Made by a program: the position numbers and the translations under genes. A stretch of DNA of 64,000 bases from IMG/VR virus record IMGVR_UViG_3300027782_000025, positions 124,001 through 188,000 of that record; one strand, 5' to 3'. The notes under the pieces are model-generated. The model made no database searches and was not told the DNA's origin. It worked only from the letters and a program-made list of their open reading frames with translations. Shown here piece after piece: positions 976 through 54,227 of this stretch (positions are counted from its first letter, which is position 1; each line of letters opens with the position of its first letter).

Positions 976-3900
976 CTAGCTCAATTCGCAACTGTCACCG
1001 TCACAGAATTTACTACCAAGGGCCTCATTGATAAACTCGGAATAGTCGGCGTCTCTAATGCCCTTATTATATTCGTCGACTTCTTCTTTGGTACAAGGGA
1101 TATAGGGGGCCTGTGGATAATTATGGCCAGTATGTGGGAGGAAGCTAATGCCCTTGGTTTGGTCTTCGTAAACCTCGAGCACCTTACTGATCTCCTTCGC
1201 CTCATTTTGCTTAAACTTGATAGTGCAGCTAACCTGATTGTCTGCCCAATAACGCTGATAATCGGTAGCATTGGCCATCTGCTGCCAAATACCTGCCTCG
1301 TCAACTGCTTTCACCCTCTCGTCGGTAACACCGAAGTACACCACAACGGTCCTATCTTTATCAGTGATAGATGGCTCGATTCTGTAGCCGGCATCAGATA
1401 AGATTTTAACTAGCACACTATCTTTAGCCACCCTAACAGTACGCCAGTAAGTGCCAGCCTCAGGATAATGAATGCCTGGGGTCGCGCCAGCAAGCAAGGA
1501 TACCGATCCAGAAGGCTTGACACTTGTGACTTTGATAGACTTTTGAATACACAACCAATCAGCATATATCGAATCCCATCGCTTAATCTCTTGGAATCCG
1601 GCATCACAGAATTCAGTAAGCATCTTACGCCTGCCGAATTTAGCGAACGCTTGAACTATGCCTGACTGCGATAAACCAATACGCCTATTCCTAAGCATAA
1701 CATGATTGGTGCGGGCATTGTGGGTAGGAAGTAAAGTGACAGTCTTAGCATAAAGATATGCGAATTTTAAAGTCCTCATGTAATCATCGACATTATCGTG
1801 ATTGGCAGGAAAAGTCTCGCAGAGGCAACATAGTTCGTACGATTCTAACGACTGCTCACAGCATGGGTTAGTACCCATCACCCTACCGTCAATACCCGGC
1901 TGTCTGCCATCTATCATTCTACCATAATCCCTAATATTATCTAGCCAAATTAGGCCTGGCTCTCCATTGGCAGCTATCTGTTCGCCTATCTTATCATAAT
2001 TCATACCCACATGGGCGAAGACAGAATTATTCGAAGCCCATCTGTGATGGTTTAATGCATTCCATGTCTCTATAGCAGGTACAAGTCTTTCTTCTGGAAT
2101 GCCAGACCCATTAAAGTCTTCAAGAGTGGCTTCGCTACGCATCGAAGAATATATCTTCTGTGTGCATTCATAGAACTTGCCAACTTCATCTTTATCCAAG
2201 GTAGCGATCGGGTTTTTCATGCTGCTGTAGGCAAAATCATCGGCATTGCCAAAGGCAATTTCAGCAGTGTTGTGAACCAGTCGGCCTTCTGCCACGAATT
2301 CGCTACGGTCTGGAACCGAAAGATCAAAAGTCTCTACCATAATGCCTTCGTCAACGACTGATTCTACTTCAATAGGCACCAAGCAAGCAGTCTCTGCGTC
2401 GCACAGTAAAGCGCGATTGTAGGTCATTTGATCCTGCTGAGGAGACCAAGATCTGCCATAATTGACATTGTCGCGATTTATCCATGCTGCTGGATATCCA
2501 TAATCATGGCCGCTAGAATGGGCAGTTTCTCGCAGCGTCTTGACGGCATGCGGTTGTATTAAATCCCTAAACCGTGCAATGGCAAAATCACCTACAAGCG
2601 AAATATCCCACTTAGCTTGGCCCTTATTATCAGCTTCTTTGCGAAGTCTTAGCTTGGTCGGAATTCCAAGACTCGAATAAACGGCCTGAACCTGTCTTAA
2701 AAAATCTCGGTAAATGCTCGAAATCATAGTGGCTGGACGATTCTTAGTGGAACCATCAGAATCTAATAAACCAGCCAAATAAGCTGCCCTAATCTCTGGT
2801 AGACCAAGTCTGATGTATTCTGGCACATTCAAAGGGGTCTTTGCTTGTTTGAGATTAGTATGAAGATATTGGGCAAACCGTCTAGATGTTACTCTAATTT
2901 TACGACTATTGTCTTGAGAAGGCTGTTCTTTAGGTGTAAACCCAAAGGCAGCAAAACCTGCAATCGCCTTTTCAGTAATTAAATCATGGTATTCGTCGCG
3001 GTTGATCGGAATAGAGACTGATGCGCCATGATTCTTGCGGGCTTTATATTGTCTACCAAGATAAACGTAACCATCACCCTGAATCGCTCCTAGAAACCAA
3101 GCTACTTCTGCGGTAAGACCAGGCACTACTAAATTATTACCACGTGTCGACAAATCACTGTATCCAGGCATGACAGTTGACGTGCCGGGTATAATAGCAT
3201 CTACAAATACCATCCGATCGCCGGCTTTAAGCTGATGTGCTCGTTTCCACTCATAAACACCGACACCTGTCATAACAGCTATTCTGTGTCGATCGGTGCA
3301 GCGGAACGGCCCAGTTTGGCTATTAATAGTAATAACCCTTTGGATGCCTTGAGCTACATTCTCAGCAACGGGATAATAACCGTCAGCGGTGAGAACTAGA
3401 TCACCGACCTGCACTTGCTCGATAGGTACTAAACCGCGTTTAAGATGGACCAACGTACCCTTAGGTAAACATCGTCTTACATTGCCTGCCACTACGCATC
3501 TTCCGATATAATTCATGATATCAGTAATATCAACGCTAGACAAAGTGCTGCCAATTCGCCTAGTTAAGTGATTTCTAATAAGTTCATGCAGTTCTTGTAA
3601 TATCCCAGGGCCTGCGGCCTTACCGCCAAAGCCTTTTATCGGAGCGTTCACTGGTCTAATAAGGGAATAATCGAATTGTAACGACCCTTCATTATTAGTA
3701 GTAGTATAGCTATGAATCAATGACCTTACACTATCAACCCACCCCTCTCTCGAATCTGATATCAAGTATGGCTTAATAATATCACTTGGCCTATTAATCT
3801 TAACCTTGCCGGCTCCCTTAGTGTCAAACCCGATACCAACACCAAGAAGACTCATGTCCATTAAAAAGCAAAATGGTTCAGCAGGATCAGCTTCAACCTT

Positions 3901-4356
3901 GTCATCCGTAGAAACAAACCCACAATTGTTTAATGATGCTGATCCTTTTTCCCACATAAAATCAGTACCCATCATCCAGAGGCCTCGCCCTGGCGGTAAA
4001 AATTTAAAATCCCACATTCTCTGAAACATCTCTTGTGCTGATTTCTGTGCTTTATCTAGATCGAATGGGATATGAAACTTTTTACAATGTAATCTCTGGA
4101 TTTCATAACATCCCTCTATGACTCTTATAGCCATATCTAAAAACGTCTCCTTCGAGCCATCATTCTTGACTCTTGAATACGTCCTATAGAAGACAAATTC
4201 TCCCAAGCCATTAAATCCAAATTTTGGTTTAGTACCAGCATAACCCTTTAAAAAATCAGCACTTAATTTAAAATGGCCAACAGTATCATTCGCTGTGCCG
4301 TCATTAAGATAAGTTCTAAAGCCAGTTGTCAATTTGGTCATGTAAGTGAACCCCAT
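976..4356 (-). CDS. nrdJ: Class II adenosylcobalamin-dependent ribonucleotide reductase (monomeric RTPR type), intein-interrupted
   Basis: FYRTYSR, FLPPGRGLW, SLNNCGF, LGVGIGF, VAGNVRR/TAEI, HRWASNNS, GEPG, TNPCCEQSL, TSVKPSGSVSLL and a C-terminal FCDGDSC redox pair. Confidence 0.95.
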   Translation of the reverse strand: MGFTYMTKLTTGFRTYLNDGTANDTVGHFKLSADFLKGYAGTKPKFGFNGLGEFVFYRTYSRVKNDGSKETFLDMAIRVIEGCYEIQRLHCKKFHIPFDLDKAQKSAQEMFQRMWDFKFLPPGRGLWMMGTDFMWEKGSASLNNCGFVSTDDKVEADPAEPFCFLMDMSLLGVGIGFDTKGAGKVKINRPSDIIKPYLISDSREGWVDSVRSLIHSYTTTNNEGSLQFDYSLIRPVNAPIKGFGGKAAGPGILQELHELIRNHLTRRIGSTLSSVDITDIMNYIGRCVVAGNVRRCLPKGTLVHLKRGLVPIEQVQVGDLVLTADGYYPVAENVAQGIQRVITINSQTGPFRCTDRHRIAVMTGVGVYEWKRAHQLKAGDRMVFVDAIIPGTSTVMPGYSDLSTRGNNLVVPGLTAEVAWFLGAIQGDGYVYLGRQYKARKNHGASVSIPINRDEYHDLITEKAIAGFAAFGFTPKEQPSQDNSRKIRVTSRRFAQYLHTNLKQAKTPLNVPEYIRLGLPEIRAAYLAGLLDSDGSTKNRPATMISSIYRDFLRQVQAVYSSLGIPTKLRLRKEADNKGQAKWDISLVGDFAIARFRDLIQPHAVKTLRETAHSSGHDYGYPAAWINRDNVNYGRSWSPQQDQMTYNRALLCDAETACLVPIEVESVVDEGIMVETFDLSVPDRSEFVAEGRLVHNTAEIAFGNADDFAYSSMKNPIATLDKDEVGKFYECTQKIYSSMRSEATLEDFNGSGIPEERLVPAIETWNALNHHRWASNNSVFAHVGMNYDKIGEQIAANGEPGLIWLDNIRDYGRMIDGRQPGIDGRVMGTNPCCEQSLESYELCCLCETFPANHDNVDDYMRTLKFAYLYAKTVTLLPTHNARTNHVMLRNRRIGLSQSGIVQAFAKFGRRKMLTEFCDAGFQEIKRWDSIYADWLCIQKSIKVTSVKPSGSVSLLAGATPGIHYPEAGTYWRTVRVAKDSVLVKILSDAGYRIEPSITDKDRTVVVYFGVTDERVKAVDEAGIWQQMANATDYQRYWADNQVSCTIKFKQNEAKEISKVLEVYEDQTKGISFLPHTGHNYPQAPYIPCTKEEVDEYNKGIRDADYSEFINEALGSKFCDGDSCELS
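2269..3471 (-). mobile_element. Intein (401 aa) with LAGLIDADG homing endonuclease in nrdJ
   Basis: Starts CLPKGTLV (aa 296) and ends TFDLSVPDRSEFVAEGRLVHN (aa 696), followed by Thr as the +1 nucleophile. Endonuclease blocks are WFLGAIQGDG and YLAGLLDSDG. Removing it restores GNVRR-TAEI. Confidence 0.95.
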
Positions 4357-27648: not shown

Positions 27649-27971
27649 TCGCAATCAATTTCTTCATCTCTTGTCTTAAAAACAGAATTCTTTTTAGTGC
27701 TATGTAACTTCGCCAAATCATTCTCTGCTCTTATTCTTGGTGTAGCGACATTCCAAACATAATAATTTAATATATCGGTTTCAGTAGCATTACGTGGGCC
27801 GACATTTAGCATATGCCTAACGGTACGATCGCCGGTGCCAGGCACTTTCTCTATGATCTCTTGTATATTTTTGGGTTTTAGATTACAATATTGATTTAAT
27901 GTAAAATTGTTTGCTTCAAGTAGAGCATTGTAGGCCGGCTTTGCTATTTTATATGCGCCCCTCATTATCAT
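27645..27971 (-). CDS. Hypothetical protein
   Basis: 108 aa; ATGA-type overlap with dut. Confidence 0.6.
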   Translation of the reverse strand: MIMRGAYKIAKPAYNALLEANNFTLNQYCNLKPKNIQEIIEKVPGTGDRTVRHMLNVGPRNATETDILNYYVWNVATPRIRAENDLAKLHSTKKNSVFKTRDEEIDCD

Positions 27972-28528
27972 TTTCTTCCGGTAGAGCCAAAACCACCATC
28001 ATTGCGCGCTGTGTGATCAACGACACCAGCAATGATCTCTGGTTTAACTATACATTCGAGCATTGCTTGGGCGATACGGTCACCGTGGTTTATAGTTTGG
28101 GCGATATCGGAATTGTTTTTTATAGAAATAAAGATCTCACCACGATAATCAGAATCAACGATCCCTACTTGGTTAGCTAGATTGAGACCATTTAAACCGA
28201 TAGAAGATCTGATATATAATTTTAACACTAAATCTGAAGCAAATGATGCTTTATATCCAGTCGGTATCAAAATGGTTTCGGTGGGATGAATATATAACCG
28301 AGACATTTCTGATTCTTCAGAAGTAATATCGTCTAGTGCTTCGATATACTTCCTTAAATTTGTAGCATATGCATTATATAAAAAATGCTTTTTTCTTCCA
28401 TTTAGTAAGCATTCAGACATCCGGCGTGTTAAACATGCTGATATGTCAAAACACGCTGAGCCGCTTGTCTCGAATTTCGGCAGCGGCAAATCGTTACCAT
28501 TTAGCCTTTCTAAAGTTATTTTATACAT
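27968..28528 (-). CDS. dut: Trimeric dUTPase with an insertion
   Basis: All five motifs present: ACFDI, RSSIG, GIVDSDYRGEI, GDRIAQ, RNDGGFGSTG. Confidence 0.95.
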   Translation of the reverse strand: MYKITLERLNGNDLPLPKFETSGSACFDISACLTRRMSECLLNGRKKHFLYNAYATNLRKYIEALDDITSEESEMSRLYIHPTETILIPTGYKASFASDLVLKLYIRSSIGLNGLNLANQVGIVDSDYRGEIFISIKNNSDIAQTINHGDRIAQAMLECIVKPEIIAGVVDHTARNDGGFGSTGRK

Positions 28529-29318
28529 AAGGCTCCTCAGTAATCTCTACATATCCCTCATGTGGCCCTACATGTAAACCATGGAAAAAAGCGCCATATT
28601 TTGGCAGTAATAATTTATAAATCTTGTCAAAAACATACCGCATTTCCCATTCTGCATGGCGGGAAGTACGCATCAAAAGTATGTGTCTTAATTCTCGGAC
28701 ATTGACAGTAAAACCTATGTCATTAGCACACATATTAGGCAGGATTCGCCTGATAGAACTGGTTAATTTTTTCTTTTCGTCGAACCTTATAGTAGAATCG
28801 ATATCTAATTCATAATCTAATTCATCGTAACCGGCGCAGATATTCTCTAAGATAGCGTCGATCTTTTTTGAATGCTCTATATCTGGGCTAAGAACAACAC
28901 GTATAACATCCTCTCTGATGTAACGACCAGAATTTTGACTAAACGCAGTACCGACTCTGTGCCTAACAAGTTCATGGGTAAAAATCCTTGAACAGTCTCT
29001 AATAATAAAATTAAAGAATACATGTTCAAAGATACTACCATGCTTGACATCAAAACAGCCTTTAATATTATCCTTTATGGATCTTGTTCTAGTGATGTTT
29101 TTATTTGTCCCAACAACGAATGACTTGTAACATAACTTAGCATATACAGAACAAATAATCTCCATATCAGACACACCAGAAAATCTAGCTTCTTCGATCT
29201 CTCTAACAAATGGCTTGGCATCAGTATCTTCTAAATACTTTGTCAATTGATCTAAGTCCAATGTAGTTTGGCCTATAAGATAAGCGGTCGGAAACACGCG
29301 TTCGATTCGACTATTCAT
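28521..29318 (-). CDS. thyX: FAD-dependent thymidylate synthase
   Basis: HGSIFEH and HELVRHRVGTAFSQNSGRY match the ThyX RHR-x7-S motif; HAEWEMR. Confidence 0.95.
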   Translation of the reverse strand: MNSRIERVFPTAYLIGQTTLDLDQLTKYLEDTDAKPFVREIEEARFSGVSDMEIICSVYAKLCYKSFVVGTNKNITRTRSIKDNIKGCFDVKHGSIFEHVFFNFIIRDCSRIFTHELVRHRVGTAFSQNSGRYIREDVIRVVLSPDIEHSKKIDAILENICAGYDELDYELDIDSTIRFDEKKKLTSSIRRILPNMCANDIGFTVNVRELRHILLMRTSRHAEWEMRYVFDKIYKLLLPKYGAFFHGLHVGPHEGYVEITEEPYV

Positions 29319-30335: not shown

Positions 30336-30591
30336 CACGCTCTCTCCTTGTGGCTTCAAGATCAAACGACATATAATTCAAATCAGATACTAATGAATCC
30401 ACTTTTTCTTTAGCAAGTATCGCTAAACCTTTATGGCAAACGGCAATATCGCGCATAATTTTGCTAAAAACACTTCTAAGTTCGAGTGCTGTCTTAGAAG
30501 GCAATAAAGCAATCATTTCCTCTAACATCTTTATGTCTTCAAGGATAGCAGTGTACTTCTTATTGATTTCTGATAATTCATCTTCAGAAAT
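30307..30591 (-). CDS. Hypothetical coiled-coil protein, possible ATT start
   Basis: The frame is open from the AGGAG-N6-ATT at 30591; the first ATG (30528) lacks a Shine-Dalgarno. Confidence 0.6.
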   Translation of the reverse strand: MSEDELSEINKKYTAILEDIKMLEEMIALLPSKTALELRSVFSKIMRDIAVCHKGLAILAKEKVDSLVSDLNYMSFDLEATRRERDEYKRKLGE

Positions 30592-36100: not shown

Positions 36101-39056
36101 CTTGGAATGGGACCGATTGCACTTTTAGTTTTTCTAATGGTGTCGAGTCGAGTCGCGCCGGCAAATAATGAAACCTACTACCACCAGAAGTAATAATGTC
36201 GACCAAACCAGTAAGATTTTGCCCAGCATCGTCAGCACCTGTGCGATAATCAGATGTGGTTATGGTTAAAAAATATTTTCCTGCTTCAAGATTATAGTTC
36301 TTGCTGACAGATTCGCCATATCTAAGAACCAATTCATTACCAACAAAAGAATCAGAAACAGTAGCAACAGAACTGTTATTAAGATCCCAACAATTCATAT
36401 TTTTTGGCCCAAAATCATGCCTCTCAACACCCTTGACACCGACTGAACATTCTAAAGAGTCCCTAAAGAAAATACTGCTCACATTACCGCTTACCTCATA
36501 ACTATTTAATAAAACAGCTATAGAAGGAAAAAACTCGATACCTTTATTATCGACACCAGCGGATGGTACGGGCACATAATAATAATCAAGCATTATTTTG
36601 GTTGGCGAAGTGTCAAGCGATGCCCAAATAACAGAACCGCCAAAATCATCTATCGCTACCCAGTCTGCACGATTGGTGACAGGATAATATGCTGGTATAA
36701 TAAAAGTATCTAGCATATTATATTGTATCCCTGCCTGACTCGCAAACACTTTATTTAGAATCAAAGGGTTTATAGAGATACATCGGCCTGACTCTGGCGT
36801 AATTAAATTCTGATTAGTGTCTAAAATATCGTAGCACAACAAAAGCCCTGGCAATTTTTGGTTAGCGACAAATTCTGAAATTGGGGTAGCAGGCAAGTTC
36901 TTTATAAGATAGTTAAATATCGGCGCACACATAAAGCTAAAGCTACGCAGATTTGCCATCCCAGCCATAGGTAAATCAAGACTGACTATAGGAGTAATTT
37001 TAGTCACAATGCCTGTTTTATTGAAGATCGACACATCATAAACATAAGATCTTAGGATACTATAGCGTTTAATGTCTTGGGAGCCTGACGCATTAAACCC
37101 TACGAATAGAGCGCGATGGCCGGCAAATTCCGTAACGCCATTATAATCATAAGACGGCACATATCCTATACCAATACCAGTAATAGAAGGATATCTCCGT
37201 TCTGTCCTAGGTACTATATCTATACTATTAACTTCTATTTCTGATGATTTTCCTGTAATCACATCCACAGAATAAAGATGTCCAGAACCCGTGCCTATAA
37301 ACAATAACCTCATCCCAGGATCATACGCCTGAGCAGAAGGAGCATTATTGTCGAATCCTATGACATTATCAAATAAAAAAGGTAAAAAAGCAATTGCAGA
37401 ACGCTCTCGCGTTTTCATATTCATAGCAAAAAGCCTATAAGAAGCGTCATCAGACCGCTCTATATAAAAAACTCTATCAAACACTGAATCATAACTTATC
37501 AGAGATTCATTGTTTGCTAAAATCTCTGGTGCACGTGAGGATGTGTCTGGTAATGTGTAACTGCTGTTTATCTTAAAATGGGTCAGCGATTTTAAATTCG
37601 AACCTTTAAACAGAGACCCACCTTGCCATAATTCTTTAACTGAACCAAAGGCAGATACGCCTGGTGTCGTATTAGCGCCCACATAACCACATAAAGTATT
37701 AATAGAACTAGATATTTGGTCAAAATATTCACCGCCGGTTGCGGTTTGGCTATCTATAAGCACAACCGCTGCACTAGCGATACCAACCGATGCCACGAAA
37801 TTATAATAGTCTTGAGACGCGCTAATTGTCTCATCATTTAATATAAACAAAAATTTATGCCCACATTGTATGGCTTGCCGAAATGCTTCGAATTGATCAG
37901 AGCCACCCACAGCAGAGTCGACATAATTAAAATCATCGTCTAACGACAATCCGGTAGAACGATGGTCGACATAAATGCAAAAAATCTTCGTCGCTAAAGA
38001 TCTAAATCTAAGATAATCAGCTGGTTCTACTTTCTTGAGGTCAGCGCCGTTTAAAGAAAAATCATTATCAGCCATACCTGATAAATTCTTGGTCGAATCG
38101 ATTAATATCTGATAATTTAAAGGACCAGTATGACCACTAGTTCGAAACATCTGGTTAAGCATTAGACCACTAGCTGGTACTAAATCAAACCGCCAACTTC
38201 CATCTAAAGCCTTGCCGGAGCTTGTTAGAGCTAATTCCATCCTAAACCCGACAGATCTAACTATAGATGAAACTGCTATATTGCTAAGACTGCCATATGA
38301 TTGATTATTAAACCCATAAGTAAACGCATTCGCAGTCGAAACACCGATAATGTTAACAGTCGAAGAATTGACAGGCTCTGAAATCATGGCCGCATATTTA
38401 TCAACCATTATCCTATCGTTTTCGCAAGAATTATCCCAAAATCCCTTTAAAGTATTCAGTGAAAGCTTATAATATTGTTTACCAGCAAAGAACCCAATAT
38501 ATTCGGGCGTACCCCTGACTTTCGATATTGCTAACCTATAATCGTACCCACCACTAAGTAAAGCTTTGTTGGTTTGTAGCAAAGCCCTTCCTGGAGCGAC
38601 TCCTGTGTTTAAACTAGATGCATCTATGAAATGTAAGTCGATAGAACACTTATCACTATTCTTTCTACAAGAAACCGACGTACCGAATTTTTGAAAATTT
38701 ATTGTAGGTAGGTTCGGGATAGTCGATGTGTTAGTTGGTATACTTGCTGTTGTGTCTAAATTAATATCCTGCCCTAAGAAACTCACTGCATTAAACGATG
38801 CCAAAATCACATTCGGTCGTCTTATTAATTCCCTTAAAGAACCTGGGATTTTCTCTACATTAGTTATAAACTTGTTGGTGGGCGGTGCTGTAGCAGCGGG
38901 CGTGTCGCAGGCTTGATAATCGATACCATTTAGAATCCTAGGTAAACTGCTTTCAACAGTTTTATACTTATCATTACAAACCATTAGTAATGAATCGACA
39001 TCTACAGAGATTAATTCGACATAATTGGATCTCGATATATCTGATTGATCTGCCAT
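33108..39056 (-). CDS. Very large virion / receptor-binding-like protein (beta-propeller-like middle, four repeated C-terminal modules)
   Basis: 1982 aa; propeller-like blades (AYDPGMRLLFIGTGSGHLYSVDVITG); four NEVQ-type repeats. Confidence 0.7.
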   Translation of the reverse strand: MADQSDISRSNYVELISVDVDSLLMVCNDKYKTVESSLPRILNGIDYQACDTPAATAPPTNKFITNVEKIPGSLRELIRRPNVILASFNAVSFLGQDINLDTTASIPTNTSTIPNLPTINFQKFGTSVSCRKNSDKCSIDLHFIDASSLNTGVAPGRALLQTNKALLSGGYDYRLAISKVRGTPEYIGFFAGKQYYKLSLNTLKGFWDNSCENDRIMVDKYAAMISEPVNSSTVNIIGVSTANAFTYGFNNQSYGSLSNIAVSSIVRSVGFRMELALTSSGKALDGSWRFDLVPASGLMLNQMFRTSGHTGPLNYQILIDSTKNLSGMADNDFSLNGADLKKVEPADYLRFRSLATKIFCIYVDHRSTGLSLDDDFNYVDSAVGGSDQFEAFRQAIQCGHKFLFILNDETISASQDYYNFVASVGIASAAVVLIDSQTATGGEYFDQISSSINTLCGYVGANTTPGVSAFGSVKELWQGGSLFKGSNLKSLTHFKINSSYTLPDTSSRAPEILANNESLISYDSVFDRVFYIERSDDASYRLFAMNMKTRERSAIAFLPFLFDNVIGFDNNAPSAQAYDPGMRLLFIGTGSGHLYSVDVITGKSSEIEVNSIDIVPRTERRYPSITGIGIGYVPSYDYNGVTEFAGHRALFVGFNASGSQDIKRYSILRSYVYDVSIFNKTGIVTKITPIVSLDLPMAGMANLRSFSFMCAPIFNYLIKNLPATPISEFVANQKLPGLLLCYDILDTNQNLITPESGRCISINPLILNKVFASQAGIQYNMLDTFIIPAYYPVTNRADWVAIDDFGGSVIWASLDTSPTKIMLDYYYVPVPSAGVDNKGIEFFPSIAVLLNSYEVSGNVSSIFFRDSLECSVGVKGVERHDFGPKNMNCWDLNNSSVATVSDSFVGNELVLRYGESVSKNYNLEAGKYFLTITTSDYRTGADDAGQNLTGLVDIITSGGSRFHYLPARLDSTPLEKLKVQSVPFQGVNPTAITTAGSLTYLFDMPAAFNITLKNNLKPGAITSEFDGSKFIPKGVGVYGIKLCKLLDQTVILDGIKDVKLNISVTGIPRQEVNIFSAFVKVTYRDYGRPNVKKMAYRQVITDGRSSPYAGSNVPIDCDYSDTCNYWKQNGNGGTPSQYVLNQIRQSDSQMEAITNFKVTDVTLYNNCIWCIPAGSSRYDQATGKYVPTDIADTYSIFFGDFKTDMIVESIEYFFLMNKIIDRNNTPPSCVDNKSNCKPDPATDIVVHLDYTNCNKDTKRLTRTINIGSILEVPQDLSRIFPSSRWDYIRPPSANGTALGPPIGNAINGQVGVWLSFKEILDNTSGTGADQCSAPISSQLIYNGTSLTSDRPSGCDIPNPKIGAISLFAKKVKPNFVIADISETSITNEVQYITVPLADGGTYKLTFAKSGVTQTVTVPYNATAAALKTILESNTLIGPNNVLVTAVETRSFRIEFVGSLKGMAIPIMKSVSKGLIGTYFAFTNRSVVGTKNERQTISNVSASNRAFTIFFDGEQTVTIPYDASLNTVRAALFALPSIGIGNVTVSGQTTNYDGPYTGPWHIDFVGSMAGKNVSRLSTSNKDYVVYVDWIGGIGVNEVQKFSYKANSGRYTLSLYSPAGAFCTTAPIEAAATNSDIVKSIIDNCDFYAAEDIGLTLVQNGNVYDWTLEYKGKMTAQPIKQLGIQSVDLVGDEVTVVRIQIGGGKPQKIRWSYSNATAGFYILKFESVDKTIYFSDRIYYNASAADIQSVLESMTLFAPNDVVVVQNDMGVVGSYEYVLTIKKRISALLVTAIFETTLFGSPISYYIVPDGPYPYPLPYCPTLTPKIHGVDGLVCVPFPPEEGDPFAGELCCTPETISIAANKSTFFKIERDLFSPSFQINGKLATVGSLMAARNFKKSIYKPYYLVSNTCVDLVEANYTDEIKSRTIIVIINKKVDLEVPKIRIINRIKSNYPKLDYCRALSFEKNKGGQDFPDILPDKNYNI
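33720..34898 (-). repeat. Four degenerate ~95-aa protein repeats: NE(V/R)Q...G.(Y/F).L.F...T..I.YNA....(V/I)...LE......N(V/I).V......(W/Y).I.F
   Basis: Units begin NEVQYITV, NERQTISN, NEVQKFSY and KPQKIRWS. Conservation is at protein level only; the DNA has diverged. Confidence 0.8.
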
Positions 39057-39057: not shown

Positions 39058-39585
39058 TTAATTTCCTAGAATCTTATAGGCTGTAATTTTCTTATCCGAT
39101 TTCGGACGCGTTACTTTAAAAATCAATCCAAATCGTTTTAAATCGCTATGATTATCGCCATCTGTCCATCTTTTGAAAAATTCTTTTTTCGGCAAATAAC
39201 CATTATTTTTTTTCTTTTTGAATGGGTCTTCAAAAAAGATATTATCTTCGTCGCACCCCATAGCCACTACAAAGTGACCATGATCATTTGATCTTATCAG
39301 GCAAAGTATCGGATTTCCGATTTTAATTTCCTTTTGAAGTCTAGAAAGAGACATGCCGTGGTATTCTTGAAAATTAAGACCTAGTAATTTACAAGCACTA
39401 ACTAATTCTTGTGTGCTTGTGCCTTTGCCTTTGGTACTACCCAATAACCTGGTGTATTTTGATAAGTCGTTTTTATCTTCGGGATGTTCGTATTCATAGA
39501 TCGACTTCAGAGCTGCCGCCCCGCAGTCATAGTCGTGCTTTTGAGCAACCCTTGGCAATGATATATTAACCTTCGTAGTCTTCAT
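39058..39585 (-). CDS. Peptidase C39-like cysteine protease
   Basis: Q..DYDCGAAAL (catalytic Cys), GHFVV (His) and FEDP (Asp); stand-alone, no ABC transporter domains. Confidence 0.85.
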   Translation of the reverse strand: MKTTKVNISLPRVAQKHDYDCGAAALKSIYEYEHPEDKNDLSKYTRLLGSTKGKGTSTQELVSACKLLGLNFQEYHGMSLSRLQKEIKIGNPILCLIRSNDHGHFVVAMGCDEDNIFFEDPFKKKKNNGYLPKKEFFKRWTDGDNHSDLKRFGLIFKVTRPKSDKKITAYKILGN

Positions 39586-40250: not shown

Positions 40251-41063
40251 CTAAATACTCCTAAATAAATTATTAAACACTTCTAAAGCCAATTTAAACG
40301 TTTCTTTCTTTCCAATCGTACTGCCGAAACGCCTTCCAAGCGACGGTCTAAATATAGCATATTTACCACCATTCAAAATATGTTCATCTATAGCCTTAAT
40401 AATATTTGTAGCGCCTTGACCGACAGGATAAAAACCGGAACCAGTTTTAAAATCCCTAGCAATTATGCTATAAACACAAGTTTTAAGAGGCTCAAACCAA
40501 CGATCGTGAGGATTCTTATTGCTTTTCTCCATAAAACGGCAAGGATCATATGATAATTTAAACCTTTTGTGTGACGATAAAAACTTCTGAAGACTTTCTG
40601 TGTTATCTAGTAACATCGTATCAGTCATTTCTAACACCGGTACAAGCGACATCGACACAGCAAATGACGATAGTTTACTAATGAAATCATTGAAACTTGT
40701 CATATCGATAAATGATGATTTTTCGATTCCGATCTGAATAGCTTTGGCTTTAAAATATGATGCGATCGAAAGTTCTCTATCTATATCCTTTTGTACTATT
40801 GTTTTTCCATGTCCCAATTCTATCCTTACGATATTGATAGGCATATCTGCCAATTTTTTCTTAATTCTTTCTATGGTAATGTCCGGCAAAGAAGTTAGTG
40901 ATAATCCATTTATATTAAGTATAGATGCTGATTTGAATCCGCTGTCTCTGATAAGATCTATAGATTCATCGATGTTATCATGATGTTCGTCGATGCAGGC
41001 CGAGACTTCTAAATTATTACGATAGGTCAATGACGTGGTCATATTGTGGGCCAGTTCCAACAA
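40251..41063 (-). CDS. Xylose-isomerase / AP-endonuclease-2-like TIM barrel with a degenerate metal site
   Basis: SACIDE, PVLE, SYDPCRF, IIARD and PVGQG follow the spacing of the sugar-phosphate isomerase/epimerase family. Likely start is 41042. Confidence 0.7.
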   Translation of the reverse strand: MLELAHNMTTSLTYRNNLEVSACIDEHHDNIDESIDLIRDSGFKSASILNINGLSLTSLPDITIERIKKKLADMPINIVRIELGHGKTIVQKDIDRELSIASYFKAKAIQIGIEKSSFIDMTSFNDFISKLSSFAVSMSLVPVLEMTDTMLLDNTESLQKFLSSHKRFKLSYDPCRFMEKSNKNPHDRWFEPLKTCVYSIIARDFKTGSGFYPVGQGATNIIKAIDEHILNGGKYAIFRPSLGRRFGSTIGKKETFKLALEVFNNLFRSI

Positions 41064-42216
41064 GCGTTACAGGTATTCCGGCAACATCCTCAAGCATCTT
41101 TATGAAATCAAGGATCTTCGGGGTAAGTTTGTCTCTTGATGATGAAGCAAAGCAAGTCCAGTCGATGTAATTAGCAAAATTAAGAGCTAATTTGGTAGCG
41201 CCATTAACCATCACAGCCTCACGCAGTTGTCTTTTAGAAAAAGAAAATACTCTTCTGACCCTCTTTGTAACTGTCGTTTTCTCTTTTTCTCTTAAGATAG
41301 TTGCATATTCTAATGGCATCTCTGATTTTCTAGCTATTTCTTCCCAATCAATTTCGACCTGATCGTCATACCCTCCGCCAGAATATCCCTTCTGAACGCC
41401 TTCTTCAATCACATTACCGACTCTGATTGGATAAGGCCGAAGTACAAGGTAAACATCACCAAGGTACTTTGGAGAAATCCCCATATCGGCTAAGTTTTGA
41501 ACTGCAGAAGTGCCACGGCTAGTGCAAGTGGGGTATGAATGACCGTGGTTGATGTCAAGTGAGAATCCTTGTGCGCCTTCATGTAAAAATGTGAACGTAG
41601 CTCTAAGCACACAGTCAATATATTCGTGAAGAGCTTCACAATGGTGTTTACACATTACATTAAATGGATCAAAAAGCGACATGTCCTCTAATATGGCAGA
41701 AGGTCGTGTCCACGTTTTGCAAAATACAAATCTGCTTAACTCTTCATAATCCACTGCTAGCTTCGTCCCCGGCAGCCTTTGTATCTTGTCTGCTATGGCA
41801 GCACCACAACCTTGCATTGTGCTCGCTAGATGCTTAGTGCTGTCTTTGCCTTCATTTTCCCTTGCTCTGTGCTCTTCCGTGATTACCATAGCTCTTTGGT
41901 GAATAATAAGCCTATCTATACTTCCTGTTAATTCTACTTCTTTCATCAGCTGTAGTAAAGTAAATGCAGAAGAAGAACCCATGATTATCCAAGGATTGTA
42001 ATTTGGTAGCCATTTCCTCAAGATCGCAGCCGATGGCATCGCTTTTGCAATATATGCAGTACCGTCTACGTTAACAGCTGTATGACCAGCATTAGCCATG
42101 TTTGTATTTGATAAAAATTCGGGTCTGTATTTTTGTGCGAGATAAGAAGTTATCAGACCTTTACCAGTGCTGCCGAACTGACCATCAGTAACCACATTGA
42201 ACTTACCGCGTTGCAT
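41017..42216 (-). CDS. purZ: PurZ-type N6-succino-2-amino-2'-deoxyadenylate synthase (adenylosuccinate synthase paralog)
   Basis: QFGSTGKG (Ser16 in place of the PurA catalytic Asp), NAGHT, STMQG, HEGAQGFSL, YPTCTSR, PIRVG, TTVTKRVRRVFSFS, LNFANY (not the PurA motif TKLD), GTGP. Confidence 0.85.
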   Translation of the reverse strand: MQRGKFNVVTDGQFGSTGKGLITSYLAQKYRPEFLSNTNMANAGHTAVNVDGTAYIAKAMPSAAILRKWLPNYNPWIIMGSSSAFTLLQLMKEVELTGSIDRLIIHQRAMVITEEHRARENEGKDSTKHLASTMQGCGAAIADKIQRLPGTKLAVDYEELSRFVFCKTWTRPSAILEDMSLFDPFNVMCKHHCEALHEYIDCVLRATFTFLHEGAQGFSLDINHGHSYPTCTSRGTSAVQNLADMGISPKYLGDVYLVLRPYPIRVGNVIEEGVQKGYSGGGYDDQVEIDWEEIARKSEMPLEYATILREKEKTTVTKRVRRVFSFSKRQLREAVMVNGATKLALNFANYIDWTCFASSSRDKLTPKILDFIKMLEDVAGIPVTLVGTGPQYDHVIDLS

Positions 42217-42499
42217 CTTGAGCCTCCGCCGAAGAATTATTCAGATAAGATTTTATCAGTTCAAGCATAAGATTCTCTTTACCATGAAAGCCTTCATCGT
42301 AAGCATGCCTTAAAGCCCCGATGTCTATATTATTTAATACCTTTTTTAAATTTATAGCATTGTCAATTGCTTTTAATCTGTTTAGTATATCAGAAGCTTC
42401 AGCTGACATACGCGATTTTTCAGAATGTAACCATTGTTCGGTCTTAAATAAAAGACCGATATCATCATCAAGCTGGTCTAATATTTCAATAATGTTCAT
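42203..42499 (-). CDS. Hypothetical helical protein
   Basis: 98 aa, overlapping purZ and the DeoC-like gene. Confidence 0.65.
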   Translation of the reverse strand: MNIIEILDQLDDDIGLLFKTEQWLHSEKSRMSAEASDILNRLKAIDNAINLKKVLNNIDIGALRHAYDEGFHGKENLMLELIKSYLNNSSAEAQDATR

Positions 42500-43197
42500 T
42501 TTTTCACCGTATTAATGCTTCTAATTATGCCCTTGGTCTGCTGAAGACTGGCACCGAACCTTTTTGCAGGTTCGCAAGCCAGTAAATCTTCAATACAGTC
42601 GAGATTACCACTCACTTTTATCGGGCACTTTAAGAATTGCGACATGTTGGTGATAAAAGCGCTGTGTATAGCTGGATTGGCTTTATAATTCTGAGTCTTT
42701 AAGGTGATATCATCTCGAATTAAAGTCGGCGTCTTTAGATCACGAAAGGCTTCATAGGCACTGGCTAGATCTGCTTCATCCTTAGTCCTCGTGCCTATAA
42801 CGAATCTTATCTCGCAAAGCTCACCGATAAACTTCTTTAAAAACTCAGTGCACGAAATAATTTCTTTTCTAATATCACCCTTTTGCTTTTTTGGCGATAT
42901 GTATATTTCAAAACCATCTGTTTCTAAAGAATCTAAGCTTAAGCCCTTGAACTTGTCTGTAGAAAAGACTTCACCCTTAGGCCAATCTACTGGCGTAATG
43001 ATCTTATACTTCCCTTTCGATCTGCCTCTGCAAACCAAAGCATCAGAGCTTAATGAAGGATGTACTATAATCGCAGGCAAACGATACTTGTGAGCTAATT
43101 CGAAAGATTCTAAGATCTCATTGCCTTGGAAAACATCTATTTCGATTCTCGTGAGCAGTTCGCCATTAGTCATTTTCTTGTTCCGTGATTTTATCAA
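42496..43197 (-). CDS. DeoC (deoxyribose-phosphate aldolase)-like TIM barrel lacking the canonical Schiff-base Lys motif
   Basis: AIIVHP, IITPVDWPKG, PIKVSG and KRFGAS align in order with DeoC AVCV.P, V.TV..FP.G, .IKASGG and .RIGTS. The FVKTSTG motif is replaced by LIRDDI. Confidence 0.65.
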   Translation of the reverse strand: MIKSRNKKMTNGELLTRIEIDVFQGNEILESFELAHKYRLPAIIVHPSLSSDALVCRGRSKGKYKIITPVDWPKGEVFSTDKFKGLSLDSLETDGFEIYISPKKQKGDIRKEIISCTEFLKKFIGELCEIRFVIGTRTKDEADLASAYEAFRDLKTPTLIRDDITLKTQNYKANPAIHSAFITNMSQFLKCPIKVSGNLDCIEDLLACEPAKRFGASLQQTKGIIRSINTVKK

Positions 43198-43555
43198 GTG
43201 CGCCTTTTAGAGCATCAATATCTCTGATAATATTTACATGGTCTAAGAAATAAAATGATTTCTTCTCGAAATCTTCACCGTTAGTAATAATCACGACCGG
43301 TTTACAAAGCGCTAAAGCTATACCAAGCTCGACATGCGAACCAAGCCTCGCTGGCATTAACATAACCAAAACATCGCAATCGACGACACCTTGATATTCT
43401 TTAAGTCCGATCTCCTTAAGCGAAACCTCATCGTTTACACCACCATGGGTGGTCCAATCATAAGTAATAGTGCATTGCAAATATGCAAGATACTTAAATA
43501 AAGCTTTAACATTGGTTTTATTATATAAACTAGAAGCAACGTAAATCTTAGTCAT
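43166..43555 (-). CDS. Nucleoside 2-deoxyribosyltransferase / Rcl-like (d)NMP N-glycosidase
   Basis: KIYVASS, ITYDWT, EYQGVVDCDVLV and GSHVELGIALALCKPV, with the catalytic Glu retained. Confidence 0.82.
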   Translation of the reverse strand: MTKIYVASSLYNKTNVKALFKYLAYLQCTITYDWTTHGGVNDEVSLKEIGLKEYQGVVDCDVLVMLMPARLGSHVELGIALALCKPVVIITNGEDFEKKSFYFLDHVNIIRDIDALKGALDKITEQEND

Positions 43556-43562: not shown

Positions 43563-44552
43563 CTACTCCTTGGGTTTTAAATAATCACGCAAAATTTCAG
43601 ACGCAGCCATCTTATGATCAAGTTTGTTGAACATAGACATAAAAGGCCATGGGTTGACAGAGCTACAGAAGGTGAATTTATCTCTTTCCTTCTCAGACAT
43701 CGATTCAAAAGCCGTAACATAATATTCTGCTTCCTTCTCGAATCTTTTCGCCCTGTTTTCTGGCAATACATCAGGATTTGTTCCATAAAAATGTAATTTC
43801 TTTAAATCCGTCGATGGATTCATATCAACGCCAAAGATGTAAATCTTATCGAAATTCATCCAAAGCGCAATCTGCATGCTGGCGAATACGCTACTTCTGC
43901 CTATGCATAAACCATCAACTAAATCCTTGCTAAAAGATTTAACGCCAATGTTTCTAAACTGAATAGTGCCCGTCTTTCGTCTTTGTATGGACGATGAATT
44001 AAAAATTGTCCCATTAAATTCATCCCAAAGAGCAGCGTGCCTTTGTATCTGGGAAGAATCAAAAAAAGCCCAGTAATCAGTAGGCCATAGCCTAGGGTCA
44101 GGATAGTTTACAGATAAAAATTCTATTCCTGGCCTGTGCTTGAGGCTTCTCAAATCGACTTCATTCAGCGTTGGGCCATTGCCTATGATGATAAGCGTTT
44201 TCCCTCGGCCGGTGTCTTTCAAAGATCTAGTCTTTTCTAAATAAATCGGGTCTACAGTACGTGAAATATAAGTAACACGTGGTTCCCGCTTTTTCTTTAT
44301 ATCCTGTCTTTGCATCGCCTGCTGCTGGCGAACTTCAACCGCCCCTGCCTTCTTGGGCGCAACTCTGGCACTATCTTGAATTTTCGTCGGTGGTTTTTCG
44401 GGCTTAGGTGGTAGAGGCGCAGAACGCTGCTGGTGACGCACGCCTGGTTGAGGACCATTTACTATCGATACTTTAACTGCCTGAGCTTTTAGTCTAGTCA
44501 GTAGATGGGAACTGTGTACAGCATTAGGCGAAATAGCCCTATTGTATCTCAT
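43563..44552 (-). CDS. DUF115 / MAF-like, GT42 (sialyltransferase)-like transferase with a low-complexity N-terminus
   Basis: LIIIGNGPTLNEVDL, GRSSVFASMQIALWMNFDKIYIFGVDM and HFYG; the first ~100 aa are rich in P, K, Q and R. Confidence 0.7.
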   Translation of the reverse strand: MRYNRAISPNAVHSSHLLTRLKAQAVKVSIVNGPQPGVRHQQRSAPLPPKPEKPPTKIQDSARVAPKKAGAVEVRQQQAMQRQDIKKKREPRVTYISRTVDPIYLEKTRSLKDTGRGKTLIIIGNGPTLNEVDLRSLKHRPGIEFLSVNYPDPRLWPTDYWAFFDSSQIQRHAALWDEFNGTIFNSSSIQRRKTGTIQFRNIGVKSFSKDLVDGLCIGRSSVFASMQIALWMNFDKIYIFGVDMNPSTDLKKLHFYGTNPDVLPENRAKRFEKEAEYYVTAFESMSEKERDKFTFCSSVNPWPFMSMFNKLDHKMAASEILRDYLKPKE

Positions 44553-44553: not shown

Positions 44554-45324
44554 TCATTTTCTCGGGTTATGTGTCAGGGTCTTAAGACTCCTATTAATTT
44601 TTGGTATGAGATTGTATTGGGAATCTGACAATAATTTGTTTAAACCAGCTTTCTGACTATTTTTCTTATTAAGTAAACTAAACATGCAACGATGTATGGT
44701 AGTGGTAAGCAAATTAAATACCGGTGCTCTTCCGGGAGTATATACCAACCTATTATTAACCAATTTATTTATTACTTGCAATAGTGCATCATTAGAAAGA
44801 TCACTATATTCGTCATCATTCAAGAGATTAAAACGCATACTAATCCCTGTGCACATCTTACCAATATCAGCAAGAAGGTCATGCCATGATGCCGAAGTAG
44901 GTTGTTCTTTGATATACCCTTCTTCTAAAAGCTTAGGGATCACTTCTAACCTCTGCTTAAACATGTTGTTTTTGAGCGCATTTCCCATAAACATATTATC
45001 CATAGTGAACAAACGTCTATCTAGTGTGAAAGGAGTTTTAGAAGAGATATTGCAAAGACGATATCGACCTGTTACAATGTTATTACGGGATTTGAAAAAA
45101 ACGGGGATAGGAAGGGCTAAACAATGTATTTTATACTCAGATCTAGGATCAAGCAATTCCTTCCCATGTTTTTTAAGAATTCTCCCGTCAACCATTGCCG
45201 GCGAGCAGGGTTTTGTATACAATAAATTGTAGGCCCTGTATTGTTCAAGATCTGGGTGTGACGAACCCAGTATCCAAAGGTACCAGGTTTTCTCCAAAAC
45301 GGCGCTATCACAATAGTTTGCCAT
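44554..45324 (-). CDS. Late-transcription sigma-like factor (T4 gp55-like)
   Basis: N-terminal NY, then IGKMCTGIS...DLSNDALLQVINK...YTPGRAPVFNLLTTTIHRC, which parallels the gp55 pattern DMISD.IE..L....FDP....PF.YFTQI. Confidence 0.55.
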   Translation of the reverse strand: MANYCDSAVLEKTWYLWILGSSHPDLEQYRAYNLLYTKPCSPAMVDGRILKKHGKELLDPRSEYKIHCLALPIPVFFKSRNNIVTGRYRLCNISSKTPFTLDRRLFTMDNMFMGNALKNNMFKQRLEVIPKLLEEGYIKEQPTSASWHDLLADIGKMCTGISMRFNLLNDDEYSDLSNDALLQVINKLVNNRLVYTPGRAPVFNLLTTTIHRCMFSLLNKKNSQKAGLNKLLSDSQYNLIPKINRSLKTLTHNPRK

Positions 45325-46717: not shown

Positions 46718-47098
46718 GATCTTTGGGCGGTTTAAGACTTTATCAAAAAACGCAATTGCGTCTGCTTTTGCGTTAGGATTATAACTACGCCAATTAAGCA
46801 AATGGCCGAAAGTCCAATGGCAATGACTAGCAGATTCGCATAGTGTAATAAGATTATTCGGATCTAATTCTAGCTCAGGGGCTAGATGGTAAGGCATGAG
46901 GTGGTGAACTTCAAGCGAAACTCTACCACCACACGCCAAACACATTCCATTTAATTCAAGATGAACCGCTCTAGCTTTTTTCCACTTAGAAGATCTAGGC
47001 TTAGAGGCAAAATCTGGTTTCGCAAATAAAAGCCTTGGTTTATTTAAATAATTAAACCTAAAATTACCTTTATCGCTACTCTTAAGATTTTTCCCCAT
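46709..47098 (-). CDS. HNH endonuclease
   Basis: CLACG...LEVHH..PYH..PELELDPNNLITLC....CHWTFGH. Confidence 0.88.
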   Translation of the reverse strand: MGKNLKSSDKGNFRFNYLNKPRLLFAKPDFASKPRSSKWKKARAVHLELNGMCLACGGRVSLEVHHLMPYHLAPELELDPNNLITLCESASHCHWTFGHLLNWRSYNPNAKADAIAFFDKVLNRPKILT

Positions 47099-53212: not shown

Positions 53213-53442
53213 TATAATACACCAGTGTTTATTCTACAATAGCGTTAACTATCGCAGGCATATGGTAATTACCACTCGATTTTCAATAAGTTATCGTCTA
53301 CAAGAATGAAACCGCTCTAGGAAATCTCAGAGATCATAGCCGTAAATACATCTCTTGGTTCGTAAATATATTACTTTGTTTTTTGATGCTGATTACAGGC
53401 AAAGCTGCCACCATTAGATCTTTTAGTAGGAAAGCATTTATA

Positions 53443-54189: not shown

Positions 54190-54227
54190 CTATGATTTTT
54201 TTTTAAATATACAAAGCGAACATTATT

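Follow-up and report, generated by a model that had tools for sequence, protein, structure and literature searches.

A PurZ-type enzyme and its conserved gene neighbourhood in a jumbo T4-like phage known from environmental DNA

We describe a giant T4-like phage, known only from environmental DNA and with a genome of at least 275 kb, that carries a genuine PurZ-type enzyme, the key step for replacing adenine with 2-aminoadenine (Z) in DNA. The usual helper genes were not found around it, at least within the roughly 84 kb of the genome that was seen, and different genes take their place. This uncultured lineage therefore probably makes Z-containing DNA in a new way, although its DNA chemistry has not been measured. 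The sequence analysed here (the window) is a 64,000-nt stretch, positions 124,001 to 188,000 of the 274,625-bp IMG/VR contig IMGVR_UViG_3300027782_000025. A sequence-only reading had proposed a PurZ-type enzyme in a large T4-like myovirus and a candidate Z genome, with the caution that substitution may be partial or absent. The enzyme identity and the large T4-like myovirus are supported by the present work, and the caution still stands, as nothing here measures DNA chemistry.

The ATG-started purZ frame and its QFGSTGKG motif lie exactly where the sequence-only reading placed them, whereas LNFANY, given as about 41170-41181, spans the slightly longer interval listed in Table 1. The similarity to known enzymes is far beyond chance. 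The protein matches Pfam PF00709 (E 2.3e-33, 116 bits against a cut-off of 27) and PHROG 1211, '2-aminooxy adenylosuccinate synthetase' (E 1.9e-63). Its best PDB matches are the phiVC8 PurZ structures 6FM1/6FKO (E 1e-43) and S-2L PurZ (2e-37), followed by the archaeal short-type PurA of Pyrococcus horikoshii (5K7X/2D7U, 5e-36), which shares the same short architecture and is the recognised evolutionary source of PurZ (PMC8342488); E. coli PurA scores only 1.5e-17. On the other hand, although the best NCBIfam model is PurZ NF038379 (amino_Aden_PurZ), the score of 228.8 bits falls short of its curated cut-off of 300, and the archaeal-type PurA model scores nearly as well (211 bits). The PurZ model is 293 positions long and was presumably built from small-phage PurZ.

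Comparison with the substrate-contact residues of S-2L PurZ (PMC8342488) showed that 27 of 29 are the same as in S-2L or phiVC8, the exceptions being G130->A131 and Y203->T230. The dGMP pocket and deoxy-selectivity elements of the two crystal structures (the Asn/Ala/His loop, Thr, the Arg from the partner subunit, Gln, Arg-Val with insertion, the TTVT loop and Arg) are represented. The conserved residues include Ser16 in place of the catalytic Asp13 of PurA, His45, Arg147, Gln216, Val266 (the 2'-OH block), the TTVT loop at residues 314-317 (within TTVTKRVRRVFSFS, residues 314-327), Arg321, Asn346, Phe347 and Pro390. Asn349, next to Tyr350, replaces the guanine-reading Asp of PurA and PurZ0. 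Ser is also found in 147 of 149 family representatives.

In the phylogeny, a 100/100 branch unites the Ser-type sequences, and the window protein lies in the 47-row crown clade (94/92), in a 27-row group (100/99) next to the phiVC8/S-2L/SH-Ab group, with PurZ0 and archaeal Asp-type PurA outside; a quick tree agrees. An ordinary auxiliary PurA that boosts AMP synthesis from IMP, Asp and GTP is thus very unlikely, even though Pfam sees only the general PF00709 family and large GenBank phages do carry PurA. The protein has neither GDEGKG nor the (T/N)KxD guanine motif (LNFANY instead of LTKLDV), the Val with its insertion and the TTVT loop are PurZ-like, and the 100/100 branch separates it from Asp-type PurA. 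A GTP-dependent PurZ0-type enzyme is equally improbable. The Ser is shared with PurZ0, contrary to the sequence-only reading, in which PurZ0 differed at this site as well, and an NDT-family accessory enzyme recalls PurZ0 phages (PMC12884076). However, PurZ0 of phages Wayne and Ghobes has GSEAKG, differing from PurZ at the third P-loop residue, keeps Asp at the base-reading site and is separated from the window protein by well-supported branches. 7VF6, a 'PurA-like adenylosuccinate synthetase' that may or may not be a PurZ0, scores only 5.6e-19.

The genome belongs to a jumbo T4-like myovirus, so that 'large', as the sequence-only reading put it, was an understatement. The 274,625-bp contig encodes homologues of the Gp23 capsid protein, gp21-like protease, gp15, gp19 and gp25, as well as a 963-aa sheath. 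At least 120 related protein clusters (53-96% identity) occur on contigs of up to 438 kb; all 120 nearest relatives have GS[C/T/A]GKG or could not be scored, and 115 have LNFANY. Megablast of 20 kb of the window against GenBank phages found no match, and a scan of genomic contigs found no cellular relative above 35% identity and hence no clue to the host. The characterized Z-phages are small sipho- and podoviruses (PMC8599892), as the sequence-only reading stated. In agreement with this, all 210 significant GenBank hits (E<=1e-5) are below 60% identity, the PurZ/PurZ0-bearing records listed are 39-83 kb, and the five larger phage records examined (154-283 kb) are Asp-type PurA; no GenBank phage over 100 kb that we examined has a Ser-type PurZ. 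A 2026 review of jumbo phages lists uracil, deazaguanine and acyl-adenine modifications but not Z (PMC13282480), and literature searches for PurZ or aminoadenine in jumbo phages or myoviruses found nothing relevant. An ATP-type PurZ in a large, environmentally common clade of jumbo myoviruses extends the trait to a different virion type and replication machinery, and to genomes about six times larger.

Table 1. Features of the window discussed in the text (positions are those of the 64,000-nt window).
Feature	Position	Strand	Length	Description
purZ	41017..42216	-	399 aa	ATP-type succino-amino-deoxyadenylate synthase (PurZ)
QFGSTGKG	42157-42180	-		residues 13-20 of PurZ
LNFANY	41167-41184	-		residues 345-350 of PurZ
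TIM-barrel gene	40251..41042	-	263 aa	xylose-isomerase-like TIM barrel; overlaps the purZ 3' end by 26 nt
small conserved gene	42203..42499	-	98 aa	118-131 aa in relatives; its stop overlaps the purZ start by 14 nt
DERA-fold gene	42496..43173	-	225 aa	predicted DERA-fold (deoxyribose-5-phosphate-aldolase-like) TIM barrel; an upstream TTG at 43197 would give 233 aa
NDT-like gene	43166..43555	-	129 aa	NDT-superfamily protein; candidate dAMP/dNMP N-glycosidase
conserved gene	43563..44552	-	329 aa	probable CMP-sugar-type glycosyltransferase
conserved gene	44554..45324	-	256 aa	unknown function; first gene of the syntenic run
dut	27968..28528	-	186 aa	trimeric-type dUTPase, adjacent to ThyX
thyX	28521..29318	-		flavin-dependent thymidylate synthase
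RNR	976..4356	-		class II (B12-dependent, RTPR-like) ribonucleotide reductase interrupted by an intein with a LAGLIDADG homing endonuclease
sugar-modification cluster	53383-59994			second such cluster

PurZ of vibriophage phiVC8, cyanophage S-2L and Acinetobacter phage SH-Ab 15497 shares with the window protein the GSTGKG P-loop, the NFxN/QY adenine site, the TTVT aspartate loop and the Val 2'-OH block, at 33-36% identity over the full length, but the latter has a longer insertion between Val266 and the TTVT loop. In those phages, with genomes of 39-67 kb, purZ belongs to a Z-cluster with mazZ/DUF550 and datZ, with or without dpoZ. No DatZ, MazZ, DUF550/DUF5664 or DpoZ was found in the window, confirming for DatZ, MazZ and DpoZ what the sequence-only reading had stated, or within 10 kb of purZ in 13 relatives. 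In particular, DatZ probes from S-2L, phiVC8 and SH-Ab gave no hit in the six-frame window at E<=1 or in 22 environmental loci, and a DatZ pattern scan of IMG/VR found only contigs of 52 kb or less. DpoZ-like genes do appear beside purZ in two small-phage loci. Extension into the left flank gave head and terminase genes only, while the right flank is blocked by a 3,709-aa gene that runs off the locus, and the polymerase was not found in the part of the genome seen; about 190 kb of the contig lies beyond it.

Instead, purZ is the sixth of eleven same-strand genes whose junctions are at most 9 nt apart or overlap, and nine of these genes keep their order across relatives whose PurZ is only 48-60% identical. 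The sequence-only reading had missed this conserved alternative set of neighbours, as well as the sub-threshold NCBIfam score. Synteny was examined in 13 non-redundant jumbo loci: the DERA-fold protein is present in 13 of 13, and the NDT-like protein and the xylose-isomerase-like TIM barrel in 12 of 13 each. A promoter and terminator scan of the cluster was at chance level (32 observed against 27.4 expected, and 6 against 5.2).

The NDT-like protein matches Pfam PF05014 only below the cut-off (E 1.7e-5). In a profile search of the PDB its best match was the CMP N-glycosidase 4JEN (1.1e-6), then MilB, BlsM and NDTs, with DNPH1/Rcl reaching only E about 1, and no homologue was found in GenBank phages. 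Residues Y5, N12, W34, E53, D61, H74 and E76 are conserved; Y5 and E76 are invariant, as is E53, which with D61 (at least 90% conserved) is taken as the acidic partner of the conserved Tyr/acid/Glu triad. The Glu in G(S/T)H(V/I)E(L/I/F)G aligns with the nucleophile of 4JEN/MilB and with E103 of DmtZ, and the preceding acidic residue aligns as well. An NDT-family enzyme has a precedent in Z pathways in DmtZ, part of the PurZ0-DutZ-DmtZ system of Arthrobacter phage Wayne and Gordonia phage Ghobes (PMC12884076), and NDTs are associated with dZ-enriched contigs (bioRxiv 10.1101/2025.10.22.683976). Yet the similarity to DmtZ is only marginal (no phmmer hit; hhalign probability 58%, E 1e-4 over 61 columns), the protein appears closer to the MilB/BcmB-type NMP N-glycosidases, and, as its nearest solved relatives act on CMP, its base specificity remains obscure. 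It may nevertheless be functionally analogous to DmtZ.

The DERA-fold protein could be identified only by its predicted structure. A single-sequence AlphaFold model was unusable (pLDDT 39.8), but AF2 with an 80-sequence alignment gave pLDDT 93.2 and pTM 0.90, and the top 50 Foldseek matches in the PDB are all DERA (E 4e-11, TM 0.75-0.80, 10-17% identity). Profile searches of PDB sequences, Pfam on all 80 members, hhalign against E. coli DeoC and a BFVD search gave no match. The family has only 191 proteins, of which four are named deoxyribose-phosphate aldolase by JGI. The phosphate-binding SGN and G-A-S motifs are retained, whereas E89, R123, R153 and K186, each invariant in the 80 sequences, appear to occupy the positions of D102, K137, K167 and K201 of E. 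coli DERA. The Schiff-base lysine thus appears to be replaced by arginine, and dR5P cleavage is doubtful. This assignment rests on strand register and spacing (34/30/33 against 35/30/34 residues) rather than superposition, and K159 or K74 could substitute.

For the xylose-isomerase-like protein, of unknown substrate, Pfam PF01261 (AP_endonuc_2) was detected in orthologues from two relatives, and its profile matched Art22 (2e-4) and AsbF (2e-3) in the PDB. The small protein coupled to purZ is not a MazG/MazZ, as it has no conserved acidic cluster and hhalign gave a probability of 0.2%. The 329-aa protein shows weak MptE-like/DUF115, WaaZ and CstII sialyltransferase signals (E 0.2 to 1e-5). It is conceivable, though unlikely, that the block makes a further-modified purine, PurZ supplying dZ nucleotides or a related succinylated intermediate that the DERA-fold, TIM-barrel and glycosyltransferase-like proteins convert into, or attach as, a hypermodified base. 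Four conserved enzymes of unassigned function do flank purZ in fixed order, Arg apparently in place of two catalytic Lys suggests a different anionic ligand for the DERA-fold protein, and a second sugar-modification cluster is present (Table 1). However, there is no precedent, and no DNA-acting domain (glycosylase-fold transferase, kinase or amidoligase of known hypermodification systems) was identified in the part of the genome seen.

We consider it more likely than not that PurZ condenses dGMP with aspartate during infection, using ATP (and possibly dATP, as reported for S-2L PurZ), to give dSMP. dGMP is abundant if host DNA is broken down to dNMPs, as T4-like phages do, and the window encodes SbcCD/gp46-47-like nuclease subunits. 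Host PurB and host kinases would then convert dSMP to dZMP and dZTP, and the phage replisome would incorporate Z opposite T. On weaker grounds, we suggest that adenine is excluded not by DatZ but by the NDT-superfamily enzyme, acting on dAMP to give adenine plus deoxyribose 5-phosphate, as DmtZ does in PurZ0 phages, while the DERA-fold and xylose-isomerase-like proteins would bind or process the phospho-sugar product. That would make this a third, independently assembled accessory set for Z-DNA synthesis. A canonical DatZ/MazZ pair in the remainder of the genome is not excluded.

Alternatively, and less probably, PurZ is active but the virion DNA is only partly Z-substituted or not at all, the enzyme and its neighbours serving to reshape purine deoxynucleotide pools (draining dGMP, consuming dATP, recycling host dNMPs) or to counter a host defence. 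No recognizable dATP triphosphohydrolase or Z-selective polymerase was found in the sequence searched. The class II RNR, also noted in the sequence-only reading, could supply dATP without passing through dAMP, so an NMP-level glycosidase alone may not exclude adenine. The DNA is 61% A+T, so full substitution would need a very large dZTP flux. In E. coli, PurZ-containing clusters without a matched replisome give only partial substitution (bioRxiv 10.1101/2025.10.22.683976). On the other hand, every PurZ-bearing phage whose DNA has been analysed, as cited in the papers read here, has Z in its DNA (PMC8342488, PMC12884076), the gene is kept with an intact pocket across a large clade, and an NDT-family neighbour fits adenine removal.

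It is possible, if doubtful, that a widespread lineage of jumbo T4-like phages (275-440 kb) has fully Z-substituted genomes, by far the largest natural ZTGC-DNA molecules, copied by a T4-type replisome without DpoZ. Adenine would then be kept out without DatZ or MazZ by a previously undescribed trio of a MilB-like deoxynucleotide N-glycosidase, an apparently lysine-less DERA-fold protein and a xylose-isomerase-like barrel. The clade offers candidates for new nucleotide-pool enzymes, of practical interest for making Z-DNA in vivo, and a natural test of whether a T4-type replisome can copy Z-DNA without a dedicated polymerase.

The window has no tRNAs. Its Dut, 13 kb from purZ, is the only window protein that hits the DutZ probes, but its best relatives are ordinary phage and enterobacterial dUTPases, and its identification as a DutZ was not supported. 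Relatives carry inteins inside purZ, as the RNR does here, which fits a conserved and important gene.

The ATG-initiated ORF that the sequence-only reading had identified as a PurZ-type gene was recovered at exactly the coordinates proposed there, with QFGSTGKG as residues 13-20, at the DNA positions that reading had assigned to it, TTVTKRVRRVFSFS as residues 314-327 and LNFANY as residues 345-350. The encoded protein matches several independent libraries, including the Pfam adenylosuccinate synthetase family PF00709 (E 2.3e-33) and PHROG 1211, annotated as '2-aminooxy adenylosuccinate synthetase' (E 1.9e-63). Among solved structures, the phiVC8 PurZ entries 6FM1/6FKO/6TNH match best (E about 1e-43), followed by S-2L PurZ 7ODX (2e-37), and further down by archaeal Pyrococcus PurA (5e-36), a 'PurA-like' entry 7VF6 (6e-19) and E. 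coli PurA (1.5e-17). The observation is therefore confirmed.

Coordinates of the features discussed in the text (positions in the window unless a locus is named)
Feature	Coordinates	Strand	Length or remark
purZ	41017-42216	-	399 aa
QFGSTGKG motif of purZ	42157-42180	-	residues 13-20
Gene run containing purZ	45324 down to 33108	-	eleven genes
DERA-fold protein (predicted fold)	42496-43173	-	225 aa
C39-family cysteine peptidase	39058-39585	-	
Giant ORF immediately downstream of the C39-family peptidase	33108-39056	-	1,982 aa
Giant ORF running off the window	63408 onward	+	3,709 aa
Dut	27968-28528		next to ThyX
Class II (RTPR-like) ribonucleotide reductase with intein	976-4356	-	1,126 aa
Three consecutive gp19-like tail-tube paralogues	20503-22320	-	180, 212 and 196 aa
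Nucleotide-sugar epimerase	29319-30365		
Sugar-modification gene cluster	53383-59994		
NucS/EndoMS mismatch endonuclease (N and C domains); HNH endonuclease	49016-49630 and 46709-47098	-	
Dam-like (MethyltransfD12) N6-adenine methyltransferase, locus L016 (347-kb relative)	2596-3465		6.5 kb upstream of purZ
dCMP deaminase, locus L014 (407-kb relative)	5999-6433		

Whether this protein is a PurZ, a PurZ0 or an ordinary PurA was addressed first at the level of individual residues. The contact list from the S-2L PurZ-dGMP-dATP structure (PMC8342488) was projected onto an alignment of S-2L, phiVC8, SH-Ab 15497, Bacillus phage vB_BpsS-140, three jumbo-clade relatives, the PurZ0 proteins of Wayne and Ghobes, and E. 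coli PurA. The window protein is identical to S-2L or phiVC8 at 27 of 29 positions: it has Ser16 where PurA has Asp13, as well as the Asn-Ala-Gly-His-Thr loop, Arg147, Gln216, Arg265-Val266 (the valine that clashes with a 2'-OH), the TTVT loop, Arg321, Asn346, Phe347 and Pro390. Position 349 is Asn, as in phiVC8 (N297), whereas both PurZ0 proteins and PurA keep the guanine-reading Asp there. The two differences (G130->A and Y203->T) are second-shell dGMP positions that also vary within the clade.

Phylogenetic analysis pointed in the same direction. A 149-row quick tree and a 98-row IQ-TREE with ultrafast bootstrap/SH-aLRT support, the latter including archaeal and bacterial sequences recovered from 185,579 species genomes, gave the same picture: Asp-type archaeal PurA is basal, a 100/100 branch unites all Ser-type sequences, and PurZ0 and forms that keep Asp at the base site make up the lower grade. 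The window protein falls in the crown clade with GS[T/C/S]GKG and NFx(N/Q)Y (94/92), where it sits in a 27-row group (100/99) beside the group holding phiVC8, S-2L and SH-Ab. At the base of the Ser-type radiation lies a 15-row clade of Ser-type PurA-like paralogues (GSEGKG with LNHxDY) from ordinary bacterial chromosomes and large MAG contigs (Nostoc, Lacibacter, Binatia, Actinomycetota, Acidobacteriota and others); CPR bacteria and DPANN archaea also carry Ser-type forms. On the other hand, the curated NCBIfam PurZ model NF038379, although the top hit, scores only 228.8 bits against a cut-off of 300, while the archaeal-type PurA model scores 211 against a cut-off of 368. By NCBI's rule, the protein would therefore not be automatically named PurZ. 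We read this as divergence of an unsampled clade and not as a different function, because the residue and tree criteria are both satisfied, and it is very likely that the enzyme is a functional PurZ.

The window has no nucleotide match among 50,697 GenBank phage records, but the identical protein is found on 16 environmental contigs, and one IMG/VR locus from a 274,625-bp viral contig is base-for-base identical to the window over 21,197 bases, which places the window at 124,001-188,000 of that contig. The window and its left flank encode a 963-aa tail sheath, baseplate wedge and gp25, three gp19-like tube paralogues, a gp15-like protein and a tape measure, as well as terminase, a gp21-like S77 protease and a Gp23 major capsid protein. 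Replication and nucleotide genes include primase, two helicases, SbcC and an SbcD-like phosphoesterase, NucS, ThyX, Dut and a class II ribonucleotide reductase (RNR; 295 bits, below the 340 cut-off) that holds an intein with Hom_end/LAGLIDADG_3 domains. The virus is thus a jumbo T4-like myovirus, in agreement with the sequence-only reading, which had placed the gene in a large T4-like myovirus.

Relatives with 48-60% identical PurZ lie on contigs of 96-438 kb. A word-indexed search found 2,614 relatives at E<=1e-10, the 120 best of which are 53-96% identical; of these, 118 have GS[C/T]GKG and 115 have LNFANY. An exhaustive search found 2,850 50%-identity clusters at E<=1e-3, and in seven of the relatives that it returned the PurZ genes, of 730-1,197 aa, are interrupted by inteins carrying LAGLIDADG homing endonucleases. 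There are at least two insertion sites, near the NAGH catalytic loop and near the CTSR dGMP-binding strand, and one of these genes has two inteins. No cellular genome has anything above 35% identity. Among GenBank phages, all 210 significant hits at E<=1e-5 are below 60% identity, and the listed PurZ/PurZ0-bearing records are 39-83 kb phages, while the five larger phage records that hit weakly (154-283 kb) all have Asp-type GD[E/A]GKG.

To look for the known accessory genes, proteins from phiVC8, S-2L, SH-Ab 15497, Wayne and Ghobes (MazZ, DatZ, DpoZ, DUF550-DUF5664, DutZ, DmtZ and neighbouring unknowns) were used as probes against every six-frame ORF of the window at E<=1. Only the PurZ probes and the Dut-family probes gave hits, the latter to a single Dut ORF whose best relatives are ordinary dUTPases of Klebsiella and E. 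coli siphoviruses and of enterobacteria. The same probes found nothing within 10 kb of purZ in any jumbo-clade locus, although two small-phage loci (43-kb contigs, with PurZ 42% and 32% identical) do have a DpoZ-like polymerase beside purZ. A DatZ-alignment scan of IMG/VR returned 28 loci, all on contigs of 52 kb or less. The canonical Z-cluster is therefore absent from the regions examined, which exclude about 190 kb of this genome.

Instead, purZ lies in a run of eleven same-strand genes with junctions of +9 to -26 nt. The order across 13 non-redundant jumbo-clade loci is 256 aa, 329 aa, NDT-like, 225 aa, a small ORF, purZ, 263 aa, 70 aa and 147 aa, with an occupancy of 12/13 for the NDT-like, 13/13 for the 225-aa and 12/13 for the 263-aa protein. 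The 129-aa NDT-like protein has a sub-threshold hit to Pfam PF05014, and its ortholog profile matches CMP N-glycosidase 4JEN (1.1e-6), MilB, BlsM and several nucleoside deoxyribosyltransferases, with the nucleophile Glu aligned. Its residues Y5, N12, W34, E53, H74 and E76 are invariant, and D61 is nearly so. It has no homologue in GenBank phages and only a marginal profile match to DmtZ (58%).

The 225-aa protein has no sequence match anywhere, yet with an 80-sequence alignment it is confidently predicted to fold (pLDDT 93.2, pTM 0.90), and the top 50 PDB matches of the model are all deoxyribose-5-phosphate aldolases (E 4e-11, TM 0.75-0.80). BFVD, the viral structure library, has no counterpart. 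The family has 191 members, all uncultured, four of which had been named deoxyribose-phosphate aldolase by JGI. By β-strand register and spacing, the positions of E. coli DERA D102/K137/K167/K201, which include the Schiff-base Lys and the β5 Lys, appear to be occupied by invariant E89/R123/R153/K186, while the phosphate-binding loops are kept. The protein probably binds a phospho-sugar or nucleotide, but it may not be a Schiff-base aldolase; this is an inference and not the result of a superposition. Of the remaining neighbours, the 263-aa protein is a xylose-isomerase-like TIM barrel (PF01261 in relatives, with weak matches to Art22 and AsbF), the 329-aa protein has weak glycosyltransferase signals, and the small ORF is not MazG-like.

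From the established pathway (PMC8342488, PMC12884076), it is inferred that PurZ converts dGMP, aspartate and ATP to dSMP and that host PurB and host kinases finish dZTP; S-2L PurZ can also burn dATP as its phosphate donor. By analogy with DmtZ, and with the reported association of NDT domains with dZ-enriched contigs (bioRxiv 10.1101/2025.10.22.683976), the NDT-like enzyme possibly hydrolyses dAMP to adenine plus deoxyribose 5-phosphate, which would block the salvage of host-derived adenine deoxynucleotides, a route that matters in T4-like phages that recycle host DNA as dNMPs. The two barrel proteins would then handle the sugar phosphate. The weak point of this scheme is dATP made directly by the class II RNR, for which no dedicated hydrolase was found in the regions examined. 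It is somewhat more likely than not that the virion DNA contains Z, whereas the assignment of the NDT-like enzyme as the adenine-exclusion step is tentative and slightly less likely than not. One 347-kb relative encodes a Dam-like N6-adenine methyltransferase upstream of purZ, and a 407-kb relative has a dCMP deaminase there; a Dam-type enzyme would be curious in a fully Z-substituted genome.

The PurZ family is already known, and the enzyme described here is a divergent addition to it. What is new is its occurrence in a jumbo myovirus, the lack of DatZ, MazZ and DpoZ in the regions examined, and a different conserved accessory set. The system resembles the PurZ0/DutZ/DmtZ logic in using an NDT-family enzyme, but differs in pairing that enzyme with an ATP-type PurZ and in an apparently non-orthologous NDT lineage, which fits the 'functional convergence' picture of PMC12884076. 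We found no paper linking PurZ or aminoadenine to jumbo, huge or myovirus phages. However, more than 2,000 viruses have been predicted from PurZ homology (PMC13128860), and members of this clade may therefore already sit unremarked in such lists. The interpretation offered by the sequence-only reading thus holds, and the finding is of more interest than was stated there, because it represents a whole jumbo-phage lineage with an alternative accessory module, although in the absence of DNA chemistry or enzyme assays it remains a prediction.

Other genes of the window are also of note. The NucS/EndoMS mismatch endonuclease is complete and is conserved near the block in relatives, and an HNH endonuclease is also present. 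The sugar-modification cluster comprises a GT2/GT92-like glycosyltransferase, an FkbM methyltransferase, a hexapeptide acyltransferase, two more methyltransferases, DUF5672 and a MobA/IspD-like nucleotidyltransferase, with a nucleotide-sugar epimerase encoded separately. Finally, the pair of C39-family cysteine peptidase and giant protein is conserved in relatives, where the giant protein is 1,491-3,522 aa and one has a VWA domain.
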